Part shown: one piece after another, positions 17,096 to 24,714 of the stretch | Layout of the letters: each line of letters opens with the position of its first letter | Numbering within the stretch: position 1 is the stretch's first letter | NCBI GenBank assembly: GCA_904063045.1 | Contig: CAJFCJ010000006.1 | Span: forward strand, 3,860,408-3,924,407 | Source: Dimorphilus gyrociliatus | Lineage: Eukaryota; Animalia; Annelida | Length of the DNA: 64,000 bases | Direction of reading: 5' to 3' | Made by a program: the position numbers and the translations under genes | The notes under the pieces: generated by a model | The model's input: only the letters and a program-made list of their open reading frames with translations | Databases searched by the model: none | Told to the model about the DNA's origin: nothing

Positions 17096-19575
17096 ATGAC
17101 GGATTTTTTTTTATCTCCTTTTGCCAATGAAGTAAATTTATACGAGTTTCAGTTATCACAATTGTATTTAATTATAATCCGTATGAAATATATATGACAT
17201 ATAATTTAAATTATATCTAATGTAATATCGCTCAAACAGCTGTTTTTTTGCTTAAATAGAGGCTTATTGAAAGTTATCGGGACCAGCAGAAATGTCTGGC
17301 TTATCTAGTTGGATATGAGGTTTCGAAAGGCGAAACCCATATCCTTGGAAGTATCAAAGTATTCGAATATTATTTAAATAATCTGTTTGCTACATGGCGA
17401 AAAAACGAGGAAGTTCTTCCGGCAAGTAAGTCGAATAAGTTGACAAATTATTTTACTTGAACTTATTTCAATAATGAAATTGTAGATTTGAAATTCTGCG
17501 GAGTTTGTGTTACTCAGAATCAATCAGAGGATGTCGATGAGTTTATAGAGAAAATTAACAAGTTAGCAATACCTCCAGATTTCCAGGTCTGTTCATGTTT
17601 CTTTGATTTTTCCATCATATAAAACAACTTTTTACTCTTTGTCTTATAGTCACAAGAACAAATAAACAAAATGGTTGTTTTACTGCATAATGAAAATTCT
17701 AAAGCTTCAGAACTTCCAAAGTCATTCTTGTACAATTATCAAACGAAAAACTATTCAGAAATTCCATTAGAATTTTCCAAATCAAATATATTGGACGATT
17801 GCATTCGATTTTCAATTAAACAGACAATTAATGTAGCTTACGACTCAAGTAAATAATTAATTAGTTAATTAATTAACCTATATTTTTGAAAACTATCTAT
17901 TATTCATGCAGAAAACTTAAAAGAAACTTTTGCTTCCCAAATTGATAATTTAATGAAACGAATGGATAATCCAAAAATTGTTTATGATATACTACAAAGC
18001 GATATAATGTTACGAAACAATGGTAAAACTATATCTGTTGAAGCTGAAAATTCTGCAATAACTATATTGGATAAAATTCAAGAAGAATCTGATGGATTTG
18101 AAATAGTTGACAAAAAGAAAAAGAATAAAAGTCGTATAATTAAAAAGGTATTAATTATTTTAATTAAATAATTAAATAATTATATATTGTATATAAATAT
18201 TATATTTTAGGTACCCTACGCTGTGGAAATTTTGGAATCAAATATCTCACAAGATGTTTCAGTTGCTGTTATATCTCCAATAAAAAAATGTAAATTTTAT
18301 ATAGAATATTTTATAATAATATTCTATTTGTATTTTGTTTTCTTTAGCTGTCGACACTTATACATTAGATTTAAATGTTATATGCTTTGTTCATCGTGAT
18401 GAAAAATTGAAAAATATTTGTGAAATATTCAGGAATGGTTTAAAACGCCAAATTTCATCTTTTTATAGAAGAGCTATTGATTCTATTAATAACGTAAGTA
18501 AAATTTAATTTAATAAAAAGTATTTATTTTCAATTGTTCTAGAACGAGAAATTAGTGAAATATGAAGTTGTTCATTTCTGGCCTGATCAACTTATTTATC
18601 CAATTTTTTCGCTTTATCCAGAGAATTCTAACGATGAAGAATTAAGTATATTGATTAATATTTAAAAGATTATAAGATATTAATTTATATAAAATGTATT
18701 AATTAGAAAAGTATCGCGAGAGTTTACACGACATTTTTCTACTTCCGAAAACTATGCCTTTGTTCAGATGGAAAAACAAATTTGACTTTAAGCATTCTAC
18801 TAAAGATGTTAAAGGGTTTTTAATCTGTCCTCACAAACTTATTAAAAAGACTATAGGTAAAATATGAATTATATTGTTATGCAATATATTGAATAATAGT
18901 TTGTTTCTCTAGATCCAAGTCACAATGTTTCACTTGTTAAAGGCCGATACACTTATCATCATTATATGCAAGATAATTTTAATGATAGTGGTTGGGGTTG
19001 TGCTTATCGATCCTTGCAGACTTTAATTTCTTGGTTTAAGCTACAATCTTACACTGAAAAAGATATTCCAAGTATAACTGATATTCAAAAGACGCTTGTA
19101 AAAATTGGAGATAAGCCTGAGAACTTTGTGAATTCTAGACAGTGGATTGGTTCTTTTGAGGTTTCTTTTGTTATAGAAGATTTGTTAGGTAATATTATTT
19201 AATAATGGTTAATTAGATCTGCAATTTTTTACTCAAACTTTTGAACTTGTTTAAAAAGGTGTGTCTTCCAAGTTTATATCAAGCGTTTATGGTTCTGAAA
19301 TAGCATCTCGGGCAAGAGAATTAGCCAGCCACTTTAATAAAATAGGGTCTCCGGTCATGATTGGAGGAAATAATCTTGCTCATACAATCTTGGGAATAGA
19401 CTTCAACGAGCAAACAGGACAAGTTAAATTTCTAATATTAGATCCCCACTTTACTGGAGGTGAAGATATTGATATCATTCTAAATAAAGGATGGTGTGGC
19501 TGGAAGGAAGAATCATTCTGGAATCAGAATGTTACATATAACATGTGTCTACCTCAGGCACCTAGTACTGTTTAA
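17096..19575 (+). CDS. UFSP2: UFM1-specific protease 2, multi-exon
   Basis: [23 protein letters not shown] (catalytic Cys), PVMIGG..LAHTILG and [10 protein letters not shown] (Asp/His); long N-terminal domain as in UFSP2. The start exon was assigned manually. Confidence 0.9.
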
Positions 19576-19998: not shown

Positions 19999-22900
19999 TT
20001 AAATCAAATGAACTGCCTTAGATGATCCTCTTAAGCTGTAGTATATTGAGTTCGAACCGACTAGTATTATCTCACTACCACCTTGAGTAAATCTAAAAAA
20101 GTAAATAACTATTAATTACAGAATTTGAGCTATAAATTAATGTTTAACCTTAGTGTATTCTCATGTAAACCAGGACAGTTGTAACCTGCTACAGAAAATA
20201 ATCCAAAGCACCTGCATAGTTGATTCAGAATCCAATGTGAGTGTTTCGAAGTTTGTTCAAAGTATATAGTATATATTCCGCCTTTGGCGGGAATGTAGAA
20301 ACCGAGACCTTTGCCAGTCAAACAATCTTCAGAGTTTGCTATGTCTAGCACTGTAGCCGATTTGATTCGAGACTTCATGTAAGCTATATAAGCATTTCTT
20401 TGTAATATCTCGGTATTTTTTAAAGTAACTTTTGATTCTCTGTATAAAAAAATAATTGGATTAGGAGTAAAGATAACAAATAAATTATCTTATAAACATA
20501 CATATTCGTTACACGATCGCGATTTAGAAATTCGCTCAGCATATTTGCCTGCTGGCTTAGGCCATCGAAAGGTCGACGAAAGACACGCGATACATCAGGA
20601 ACCAGTACTTCATATCCTGCTTGAATATCCCACGTATTCCACGATCTCTTGGAGCAGCACTCTTCAAAGTTTTTCTGCATAAAGGCTTCGTAGTACGATC
20701 GTTTAAGTAAAAATCCATAACCGGGAAAAAAATTGCTTCTCGTAACCAAACTATTAGCGATAGAATGACCTTTAAATCCTGATAAATATTGAAGTAATGT
20801 GTATTTCATTGGCTTTTATTCTTATAATTAACTAACCGTTCGGATTCCAAGAGTTTGTACCGACAAGAGTATGATCTTTTTCCAAAATTGGTAGTAATTG
20901 AGAATGAAAGAGGAGAAAGTCTGGTGAAACAATAACTTCTTCTTCCAATATGATTACATGTTTCTAAGAAAAGAATCAAAAAAGATTTTATCAACTTTAA
21001 ATATCATTCATTTAACTTAAGCTTACGGCAGATGAATATAAAATCCATATATTCTCCAGAGCCTTTTGTATTTGAACTAGAATTGAGATAGACATTATAG
21101 ATCTACTAAAGTAATTTACATTATTAAATTTATATACAAACCGGAATATTTAGTGCTACTGGTCAATTTATAAGTTTTGAAGGAGAATAATTCGGCTAAT
21201 TCGCCTGCTTCGGGGAATTTCTCATCATACATAACTGTTACTTTGTTAGATCTTAATCCAGGTTGCATTAATAGCGTTTCCAGCTGCATTCGTAGAGTAT
21301 TCTGATTTAATCCAGGAACAACAACTATTGGAATATCAAATATTGGATTATTTCCCATTGTTCCATCGGTCAATGGAGAAGGCGTCAATGGTTCATCGAT
21401 TCGTCCTGGAAGTGATATTTATAAAGCAAATATTAACTTATTTACAAATAAAATAAGCATTATATATCACATAAGAACAAGATTATTAAACGACATATAA
21501 ACTGGATTCTATCCAAAAGAGTAAAATTTATAAAATAAATGAAAGAAACAGTGAAGAGTAAAGATTGCAAGTATAAGGAACTCGTAAATATACAGTATTA
21601 CCACAGTATATACTGTACACATATACATAGTTTTCTATTTTCTTACCTTCGCAGAAATCTTCGTAGCCATCGTATTTACTACAAAATTTTCGTCTTTTCT
21701 CATTTTTCCTCGACATTGGATCGGGTCGAATCTTTGTTCCCTTAACTAATTATAAATAAGAAAGAGATGTAAAAATTCAATTTATTAATAGGAAATTTAA
21801 ATAAAGAGATGAAAAGGATTAAAAAACTCCTAGATTGTTTTGACGCTTACGTTTTGTAGAAACGCATAGCCTTTTATCAATCACTCTTGGCCATTTTCCA
21901 TTAGGACCAGCGAATTCCAGCTGTATTTCAGAAATATAATAAATTAATCAAATAAATTGAAAATTCTATAATCAAAATGAAAAAAATAAATAAATAAAAG
22001 TATAAAAAAAAAAAGAGAAAGCCTATTTTTTTATATAAAAAGTTTATATATATCGACATATATACAGTTGTTAATTTTTAGGAACAAAATAAAAGTATAA
22101 AAAATTCTTAACAATCGTAAAACGTATTTAAAAAGAAGTAAAGTATATATAAAAGTTAATAACGTAAGCCTATATTTAAACTATAAAACTTACATATACG
22201 AATACTTTTTCTAAACAAAACTAAAAGGAAAGAATCAACGGAATTGTGAGACTTAAATGATACTATTACTGAAAAACACCTGCTCTGTTTCACCGAAACC
22301 GTCCAAACCCTTTTGCCCTATGTATATCCAAGAATCTCTGAATTTTAAATTTTGAATCATTGCACTTCCAAGGTCTGAGAAGAGACGCCGAGCAGTTTCC
22401 GTTAATCTGATAAAAGGGTTAATAAAAAAAAAAGATACACCTATAGATATCAATTGATGGTTTAGGAGAAGAGATAACTGTTCAAAAGGGTGACACAACA
22501 ATCGTTTCTACGTAAAAGCGTCTAGTTCAAAACAGTAGCAATATTTGTTTAAGTAGTAAAAAAATAAATAACTTTCACATCTTCCGGCTAAGAATTTTAA
22601 TATTTAATCTTCTTATCTTCTTAATCAATGTAATTAGAACAATTGATTGGATAAGGTAGATTAGAACATTTTGGGTTTCTTTGTAGAGAAAGAAACCAGA
22701 GAACAATAAAAACATATCCTAACTTAAACACAAAGCTATGTATGCCTACTAAAAAAAAAACTATAATGTGAAATACAACAAAAATCGATAAAGTAAATAT
22801 TAAGTTTAAATAAAAAAAAATAAGATGTTAGAAACGTGCCTCTTCTATAGAAGTATATCCACTAATGCCTTTCTGTCCAACGAAAGCCATTGAATCTCTG

Positions 22901-24714
22901 AATGTTAAATTTTTAATCATGGAACTTCCAAGCGATTCGAGTAGATGTATAGCGTGTTGTCCTAAGCTGTGTTGTATATAATCATGCATGGAGGATCAGC
23001 ATGCTAATTAACGAATATTTTAAATATGCTATTTGTATATTAATAGGTTAATTTTATTTTTTATTTATTCGATTTCATTAAATCCTTAAACATGATAATT
23101 AAATCAATAAAATCGAAATAAATAGTATACTGTGAATTCAACACTTACGTTTATAAAAAAGTAGTAGAGCATATGTAAAATATCGAATAAAAAACTTTAT
23201 CTAAAGCTCCTACATTGATATACGCAGTATATGTAAATATATGCATATATATATATATATATGTATATACATATAAATAAAGACATCTCTATATACCAGT
23301 AAACTGTTATAGATAATGTAAATACATATACTGCATATTTTTAACAACATAAAAGCTTTTCTTATCGTGAAGTTATTAAAAGAATACAAAACTTTGATGT
23401 TGCTTTTATTGAGTTTGAGTACTTACTTCCTAGAGGCATCATCATTAACAACTGCTAGAATTATATCTCCTTCATTTAACATTTCTAGGAATATTTCTAA
23501 ATTACTGCTATCTTGTAAATAGGTATCAAATCTTCCAATTCGAGAATAAGATTTTGTTTTTGGATTTACTATAGCAATGTTAAATCCTCTGCCAGCATCA
23601 TTTAAATCCTTTGCAAATACATATTTTCCATTAATACAAATTTTAGGTGACTCTTCGTTTCCTTTTCCAGAGTACAGATGAACTGCAAAAGCCGATTTAC
23701 CACAGTCTTTTGGGACGCCACAGTTACTCATTGTTTCACCAATTTGACTTCCTGGTAAAGCAGGTTTCGCTGTGTATAGTTTTTGTAGATCTAACAATTG
23801 TCCCATTGGTACAGAAATACATCCGAACAATGTGACAATATTTCCATATGTTCCTACTTCAGAATTTCCCTTCTCTACCTGAATATTCGTATATATATTT
23901 CGTATTAAACATTATGTACATTAATCACCCATAAAACGTTACCTGTTCTATTGCAGTACCATGACTTAAGCCTCTTTGTCCTATCATTGCAAAGTTGTCC
24001 CTAAAGTCTAATTTGTCTAAAACAGTACTACCCAACATACTCCAATTCTCCCTAGCATCTTTAGTTAAAGATTTCGATGCCTCATCAAAGCTGGTTGCTA
24101 AAACTATTGCATTACCAGATATTCCTCCAATTTGGAAAAATCTTATTAGTTCTACATCACTTTCATAAGTATCAAAAGTTCTAGCAAAAGTAAGACGTAA
24201 CGTCTTTTCATCAAAAACTGCAACGTTAATTCCCCTTGCCGGCTCTCGCCCGAGTTTTTTCGCTTCTTCGTTGTTATACACTTCGATTCCATTGAAGCAT
24301 ATTCTGGGAGCTATATCTTTACCTGATTTGGGAATATCATTCTTATAAAAATTCACTTGGGCGGCGGAGAGATAGCATCGCAATATGAGAACACAAACGT
24401 TGTCACAAGTCAAATTTGAACTCACCTTGACCTGATTTAATAAAATATCGATATTTCCCCGCTGGACACGTTTCTTTTATCCCACACAAACCAGGTTCAC
24501 TCTTTGCTAGATGGTTGATATTATTATTATTATAAATAGTATGTTCTGGTCCAAAACGATTATGATCTGCAGGTTTTTTGCTATTTTCTTCCCTTAACAA
24601 TGAGTTTAGTCTATCTTTCGTTAAAATAAAGTGGTCGATAAAGTAAAGTGCAGCCAGAACAGAAAATATCCATAGCAAGAAATTTTTTGTACCTGTTCGA
24701 AATGATAAAAGCAT
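19999..24714 (-). CDS. POMGNT1-like type II membrane protein: two tandem ILEI/PANDER (FAM3-type) stem domains plus a GNT-I-like GT-A domain
   Basis: N-terminal TM; two repeats of CG...C...SG.G...P.IC.NG...RG.N.A...FDTY...DEAS/DDAS...FRD...GQ.G; then IPIVVVPG, VIILEEE, SWNPNG, FFPGYGFLLKRS and VLVPDVSRV, matching the POMGNT1 catalytic fold. Confidence 0.85.
22280..22406 (-). other. Mutually exclusive exon B of POMGNT1-like gene (127 nt)
   Basis: TCAG acceptor; encodes (K)LTETARRLFSDLGSAMIQNLKFRDSWIYIGQKGLDGFGETEQ; donor CAG|GTGTTT; phase 2 to phase 0. Confidence 0.85.
22840..22966 (-). other. Mutually exclusive exon A of POMGNT1-like gene (127 nt, GC donor)
   Basis: ACAG acceptor; encodes (N)LGQHAIHLLESLGSSMIKNLTFRDSMAFVGQKGISGYTSIEE; donor GAG|GCACGT; phase 2 to phase 0. 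Confidence 0.8.
23246..23262. repeat. (TA)n microsatellite in intron
   Basis: Direct read of an ATATAT... run; boundaries approximate. Confidence 0.75.

Follow-up and report, generated by a model that had tools for sequence, protein, structure and literature searches.

Tandem-duplicated, mutually exclusive exons whose exclusivity is enforced by the reading frame and nonsense-mediated mRNA decay (NMD) form a known class, to which FGFR2 IIIb/IIIc and many arthropod cases belong. The subject of this study is a pair of exons, A and B, in a POMGNT1-like gene of the annelid Dimorphilus gyrociliatus, located on a stretch of 64,000 nucleotides (contig CAJFCJ010000006.1, positions 3,860,408 to 3,924,407; the whole stretch is referred to as the window, and coordinates are counted from its first letter). 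Like the members of the known class, A and B are adjacent, homologous, equal in length and phase, not a multiple of three in length, and both under selection, and the introns flanking them are enlarged and conserved. As in exon pairs controlled by Rbfox, GCAUG motifs are found near the exon that appears to be regulated (A). Unlike the known class, the pair belongs to a glycosyltransferase, where it encodes part of the lectin (stem-like) domain; one copy has a conserved GC donor, and nothing points to a steric, U12, or RNA-pairing mechanism. A literature search found no report of such an exon pair in POMGNT1-like genes. We consider the kind of mechanism to be known and its place to be new, with the same exon doubled in several spiralian phyla.

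In mammals, the POMGNT1 stem senses the O-mannose glycan as it grows and takes part in recruiting fukutin to dystroglycan. Direct contacts to GlcNAc are made in the human stem by Arg129, Asp179, and Arg207 (PMC9802357). The second of the two lectin domains encoded here (ILEI-2) shares with the human POMGNT1 stem (PDB 5GGF/5GGJ series) and with FAM3A/B/C the ILEI/FAM3 fold signature, and it contains equivalents of Arg129, Asp179, and Arg207. Whereas human POMGNT1 has one stem domain, for which no exon choice was found described, the gene studied here encodes a pair of ILEI domains, of which the second has an alternative last third. FAMP-1 (M70.4) of C. elegans likewise has two FAM3-like domains in tandem and a C-terminal domain after them; its second FAM3-like domain (Fam3L2) binds sugars and is functionally critical (PMC9802357), and it is this same domain that is affected by A and B. 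In contrast to the present gene, no alternative exon pair has been described for FAMP-1, and FAMP-1 hardly resembles POMGNT1 in the catalytic part, while full-length relatives of the present gene carry the Pfam domain GNT-I.

Judged from the sequence, A and B are probably two functional alternative exons of one POMGNT1-like gene, one of which would be used per mRNA to complete the second lectin domain. The same reading, with the same probability, includes the architecture of the gene product, which is predicted to start with a transmembrane N-terminus, to continue with two lectin domains of the ILEI/FAM3 type, and to include a catalytic part resembling GT13. Exon by exon, the gene could be read from the window on the minus strand from 24714 down to ~20050:

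24714-24426, minus strand: exon 1, with the ATG and a hydrophobic N-terminus.
24355-23943, minus strand: exon 2, a whole ILEI domain (ILEI-1; Pfam E 5.6e-19).
23427..23878, minus strand: exon 3, the N-terminal two thirds of ILEI-2 (FAM3-like), with a phase 2 end (AGGAA/GTAAGT) at 23427.
22840..22966, minus strand: exon A, 127 nucleotides, the putative alternative C-terminal part of ILEI-2 (FRDSMAFVGQKG).
22280..22406, minus strand: exon B, 127 nucleotides, the canonical C-terminal part of ILEI-2 (FRDSWIYIGQKG).
21851..21920, minus strand: exon 5 (LEFAGPNGKWPRVIDKRLCVSTK), whose acceptor is common to A or B.
From there to ~20050, minus strand: seven further exons, read from the sequence.

The Pfam ILEI profile (PF15711) is covered a second time by exon 3 (positions 1-55) together with either A or B, both of which match positions 57/58-89 of 90, that is, the last third. 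Exon 5 appears similar to the W-P...C tail region of FAM3 proteins, with the tail of FAM3C as the comparison. When the exons were scanned singly, the GNT-I profile (PF03071) gave a weak match in one downstream exon (E 0.004, below the curated cut-off); the domain is present in full-length relatives of the gene.

The translations of A and B (LGQHAIHLLESLGSSMIKNLTFRDSMAFVGQKGISGYTSIEE and LTETARRLFSDLGSAMIQNLKFRDSWIYIGQKGLDGFGETEQ, 42 full codons each) align without gaps, being identical at 20 and different at 22 of the 42 positions (BLASTP E 9e-15). An earlier note on this DNA had described the two as a tandem duplication of equal length (127 nucleotides) and equal splice phases (2 to 0), with a GC donor (AG/GCACGT) on A, all of which was borne out by the exon reading; its 20 identical residues also stand, though out of 42 positions and not 43. 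Exon A is bounded by acag/CTTAGG and GAAGAG/GCACGT, exon B by tcag/ATTAAC and GAGCAG/GTGTTT, the latter being a GT donor. The acceptor of A has a weak polypyrimidine tract, that of B a long, T-rich, and strong one. The introns around the pair measure 460, 433, and 359 nucleotides, as had been stated, but the figure of ∼55 nucleotides given for the others fits only roughly, the remaining introns of the gene being 70, 64, 105, 241, 65, 63, 58, 62, and 56 nucleotides long (mostly 56-105). Within the window, the segment exists in three copies only: A, B, and the end of ILEI-1.

A word search with exon 3 led to one related species (P0001, 85% identity) and its genomic contig L001; the other four contigs found belong to the same species, and the same search with exon A alone returned no candidates. 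Exon 3 is 84% identical to that of L001 at the amino acid level, and L001 contains both A and B in unchanged order. Its orthologue of A is 127 nucleotides long, contains neither indel nor stop, and lies between an upstream tacag and a downstream gcacgtttctaa, the latter shared unchanged with the window. Both exons align without gaps between the two species (nucleotide identity 81% for A and 93% for B), whereas the intron interiors reach 40-44% with many gaps in a global alignment; the corresponding amino acid identities are 76% and 98% (41/42). The ratio of non-synonymous to synonymous divergence (dN/dS; Nei-Gojobori) was 0.21 for A (pN 0.13, pS 0.43), 0.03 for B, and 0.04-0.11 for exons 2, 3, and 5. 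Non-synonymous sites of A are depleted of differences (Fisher p 0.0005-0.004), 13 of its 24 nucleotide differences to L001 fall on third codon positions, and the ten amino acid changes are mostly conservative, the core MIKNLTFRDSMAF.GQKGI being invariant. As synonymous sites in the neighboring exons are saturated (dS 1.3-2.4), this constraint makes A unlike a neutral relic. A separate observation concerns the center of the pair: over 41 nucleotides (22924-22884 versus 22364-22324; codons LGS..MI.NL.FRDS), A and B differ at four bases, all non-synonymous, and the same central codons in L001 differ at six synonymous sites. The near identity of the two centers could be due to gene conversion, retained ancestral codons, or constraint by a splicing enhancer.

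Because 127 nucleotides are not a multiple of three, mRNAs containing both exons or neither would be unproductive. Reading the frame exon by exon gave the same outcome in both species (the window and L001): inclusion of A and B together led to a stop inside B, and skipping of both, which joins the phase of exon 3 to exon 5, ran into a stop within exon 5; the frame shift that the earlier note had claimed for either case is thus real and ends in a premature stop each time. The pair is real and under selection, and its two alternative exons are very probably mutually exclusive. In the proposed mechanism, each mRNA would take A or B to finish ILEI-2, and exclusivity would be enforced at least by the frame, products with both or neither probably being removed by NMD. 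Of the other known means of exclusion (steric hindrance, U2/U12 incompatibility, and competing RNA pairings), none was found, and the evidence points to the frame/NMD route alone. The intron of 433 nucleotides between A and B makes steric hindrance unlikely, and U12-type sites are absent from the pair, the GC and GT donors being of the U2 type and an ATATCC-like U12 consensus lacking. A scan against Rfam returned only a low-complexity match to mir-297, far below threshold. A 6-bp stem that could form between TAGAAG and TTTCTA (22822-22850) would place the GC donor of exon A in its loop; it is weak, and as neither arm changes in L001, RNAalifold registered no covariation in it.

A whole-library search with exon 3 retrieved proteins of ∼800 amino acids with two ILEI domains, among them relatives from Lingula, Octopus, Pomacea, Sinanodonta, Helobdella, Rotaria, Branchiostoma, Glandiceps, sea urchins, and nematodes; the protein clusters of P0004, P0008, and Octopus P0009 contained no isoform pairs. 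A scan of metagenomes added 66 distant loci. The exon pair, which the earlier note had proposed to look for in orthologues, was present in Lingula, in L028, L034, L053/L056, L059, and L076 (two tandem copies of 127 nucleotides each, with AG and GT sites), and in nine rotifer-like contigs, in which a divergent first copy (...FRDSWAFIHHFKT...EE) precedes a canonical second copy that hardly differs from that of Rotaria sp. Silwood2. In the brachiopod Lingula anatina, the first copy (130 nucleotides) is used by the RefSeq protein, while a second, unannotated copy of 127 nucleotides lies ∼1.6 kb downstream (L077:15002-15127; LFEI02000242.1). It is intact (LSDHAKSLFNEVGSGHIQNLKLRDLWVFVGQKGIVGYSEFEQ, with AG/GT sites) and absent from XP_013395204.1, and it likely represents an unannotated isoform. 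Purifying selection on both copies was found outside the window (in L001, with intact pairs in Lingula and several metagenome animals). Spliced mRNAs are represented by the rotifer-like contigs L011 and L012, which are full-length, lack introns, and stem from one sample. In L011, exon 3 is joined to the first copy and this to exon 5; in L012, the second copy takes that place, and neither contig holds both copies. Their nucleotide alignment is broken over exactly 127 nucleotides, and the respective segment of L011 matches genomic first-copy exons end to end. Each copy can therefore be spliced in alone.

Single copies were found in Helobdella (first type), Pomacea (second type), the Rotaria locus L008, and L010. 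The lineages that lost one copy, Helobdella keeping the first type and Pomacea the second, constitute a natural series on the role of each version. In the rotifer-like contig L030 (2120-2245), the first-copy exon contains an in-frame stop (GS-stop-KIG), and a first copy is missing from the Rotaria locus L008 and from L025-L027, which indicates that the first copy is being lost in some rotifer lineages.

Within the introns around the pair, blocks conserved between the window and L001 were found at five places: after the exon 3 donor, before A, after A, before B, and after B. They include the following:

23386..23415, minus strand: block after the exon 3 donor (AACTCAATAAAAGCAACATCAAAGTTTTGT), 87% identical in L001.
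22967..23012, minus strand: block upstream of exon A with two GCATG (starts 23004 and 22987), both kept in L001.
22822..22839, minus strand: GC donor of exon A and the next bases (GCACGTTTCTAACATCTT), 18/18 identical in L001, containing CTAAC and an in-frame TAA.
22775..22805, minus strand: second block downstream of exon A (ACTTAATATTTACTTTATCGATTTTTGTTGT), 87% identical in L001, 35-65 nucleotides past A.
22254..22279, minus strand: block after the exon B donor, conserved in L001.

GCAUG is the recognition motif of Rbfox. In each of the two species, GCATG is present exactly twice per 1.6-kb region, both times less than 50 nucleotides upstream of A, while its density across the window is 0.58 per kb. 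Exon A may be regulated by an Rbfox-type factor through these motifs. Near the paired exons of two unrelated metagenome animals, GCATG is found as well (L028:1805 and 2615; L034:6123, 7438, and 7476). It is not found near the pairs of the rotifer-like contigs, L053, and L076; the association of the motif with the pair is therefore not universal. Exon B, with its strong acceptor, GT donor, and nearly invariant sequence, is taken as the default exon, and A, with its weak acceptor, GC donor, and conserved flanking elements, as the regulated, minor form. This division of roles is likely, and under the proposed mechanism the choice of A would be regulated via the conserved intron elements, including the two GCAUG motifs.

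Residues equivalent to the sugar-binding triad of the human stem were assigned from alignment offsets to 5GGJ/5GGF, assuming that these constructs begin at residue 92. Arg129 corresponds to the R of GRG and Asp179 to the first D of NDDAS, both in exon 3, and Arg207 to the R of FRDS, which is present in A and B. The triad is consequently kept in both isoforms, and the role in sugar binding that the earlier note had ascribed to the FRDS arginine agrees with that of Arg207 (PMC9802357). Its further claim, that the choice of exon changes residues near the glycan-binding site, holds for the four residues after RDS (MAFV in A versus WIYI in B) but not for the arginine itself, which is the same in both. 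Directly after RDS, most relatives have Trp and exon A of both species has Met. The family motifs LGS, FRDS, and GQKG are all kept in A, and A and B also differ in the helix preceding FRDS and in the tail. By swapping the strand after the Arg207 equivalent, the preceding helix, and the tail, the exon choice may yield isoforms that differ in the recognition of ligands or partners.

Several results weigh against two functional, alternatively used exons. The selection test is based on one related species (L001). The protein libraries yielded nothing derived from transcripts of this species or of a close relative; in the whole-library search, the top matches were 38-42% and none more than 54% identical. 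L011 and L012 are 77% identical in nucleotide sequence and thus stem from different genes or species, so that switching inside a single gene does not follow from them. With regard to docking and selector pairing, no duplex among the conserved intron blocks exceeded shuffled sequences in both species (RNAduplex, all blocks). Finally, the GC donor of A is weak, and read-through across it ends after three codons (ARF and a stop) in both species, which would fit a terminal exon. If A were such an alternative last exon, its GC donor would stay unspliced, and a short membrane-bound protein with two lectin domains, ending in ARF and without the catalytic part, would result. The stop is kept within the 18-nucleotide invariant stretch of both species, and GC donors are in general weaker than GT donors. 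However, neither AATAAA nor ATTAAA occurs within ∼200 nucleotides downstream of A, and none is conserved; the conservation extends beyond the stop codon, every other lineage has a GT donor on its first-copy exon, and the first copy of L011 is spliced to exon 5. The truncated protein would also lack the W-P...C tail of exon 5, which completes the FAM3 fold in FAM3C. That A serves as a last exon is, all told, very improbable.

Even less probable is that A acts as a poison exon, which would be co-included with B to shift the frame and elicit NMD, and would tune the enzyme level without giving rise to a second protein. Co-inclusion does create a stop inside B in both species, and conserved flanking introns are also known from many regulated unproductive exons, but A is under protein-type constraint in the ILEI frame (dN/dS 0.21, third-position bias, and LGS, FRDS, and GQKG kept), for which a pure poison exon has no need. 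The least probable explanation is that A is an unused relic of the duplication, a pseudo-exon, and that the gene makes the B form only. Its weak acceptor and non-canonical donor, its lower conservation compared with B (76% versus 98% of amino acids), the stop in the first copy of L030, and the loss of one copy in some lineages would agree with this notion, which the earlier note had itself set as a condition refuting its reading. It is contradicted by the purifying selection on A and the conserved splice sites in L001: despite a dS of 1.3-2.4 in the neighboring exons and barely alignable introns, A has acquired neither indel nor stop, and its dN/dS is well below 1. Should A and B indeed be alternative exons completing the second lectin domain, a swappable part of that domain bearing the third sugar-binding residue would show that splicing can tune the substrate selection of a glycosyltransferase.

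With regard to the age of the duplication, a tree of 42 alignment columns at first grouped A with all other first copies (90/89), but this grouping was lost after the second Lingula copy had been added and two rows had been relabeled. Approximately unbiased tests (p 0.05-0.48) did not reject a lineage-specific origin of A and B (p 0.42), nor did they reject a tree in which all first copies form one clade (p 0.33). We regard it as conceivable, but rather doubtful, that the exon pair is one ancient switch predating the split of annelids, brachiopods, and rotifers, which would provide two lectin specificities or partner preferences, the choice between them being set in this lineage by Rbfox-type factors acting on the two conserved GCAUG motifs and the weak GC donor of A.

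ILEI-1 is contained in one exon, which ends at a codon position matching the ends of A and B (...AIEQ/gtaacg), indicating that the intron position is older than the duplication of the domain. The linker after ILEI-1 (VEKGNSEVGTYGNIVTLFGC) is similar to exon 5 (LEFAGPNGKWPRVIDKRLC). Together with the matching end, this likeness indicates that the whole domain, including its linker, had been tandem-duplicated earlier. Adjacent to the POMGNT1-like gene, and tail to tail with it, is a Peptidase_C78 (UFSP-like) gene (18966-19575, plus strand, in the window; L001:10300-10892, minus strand); its presence in both species indicates that local synteny is kept.

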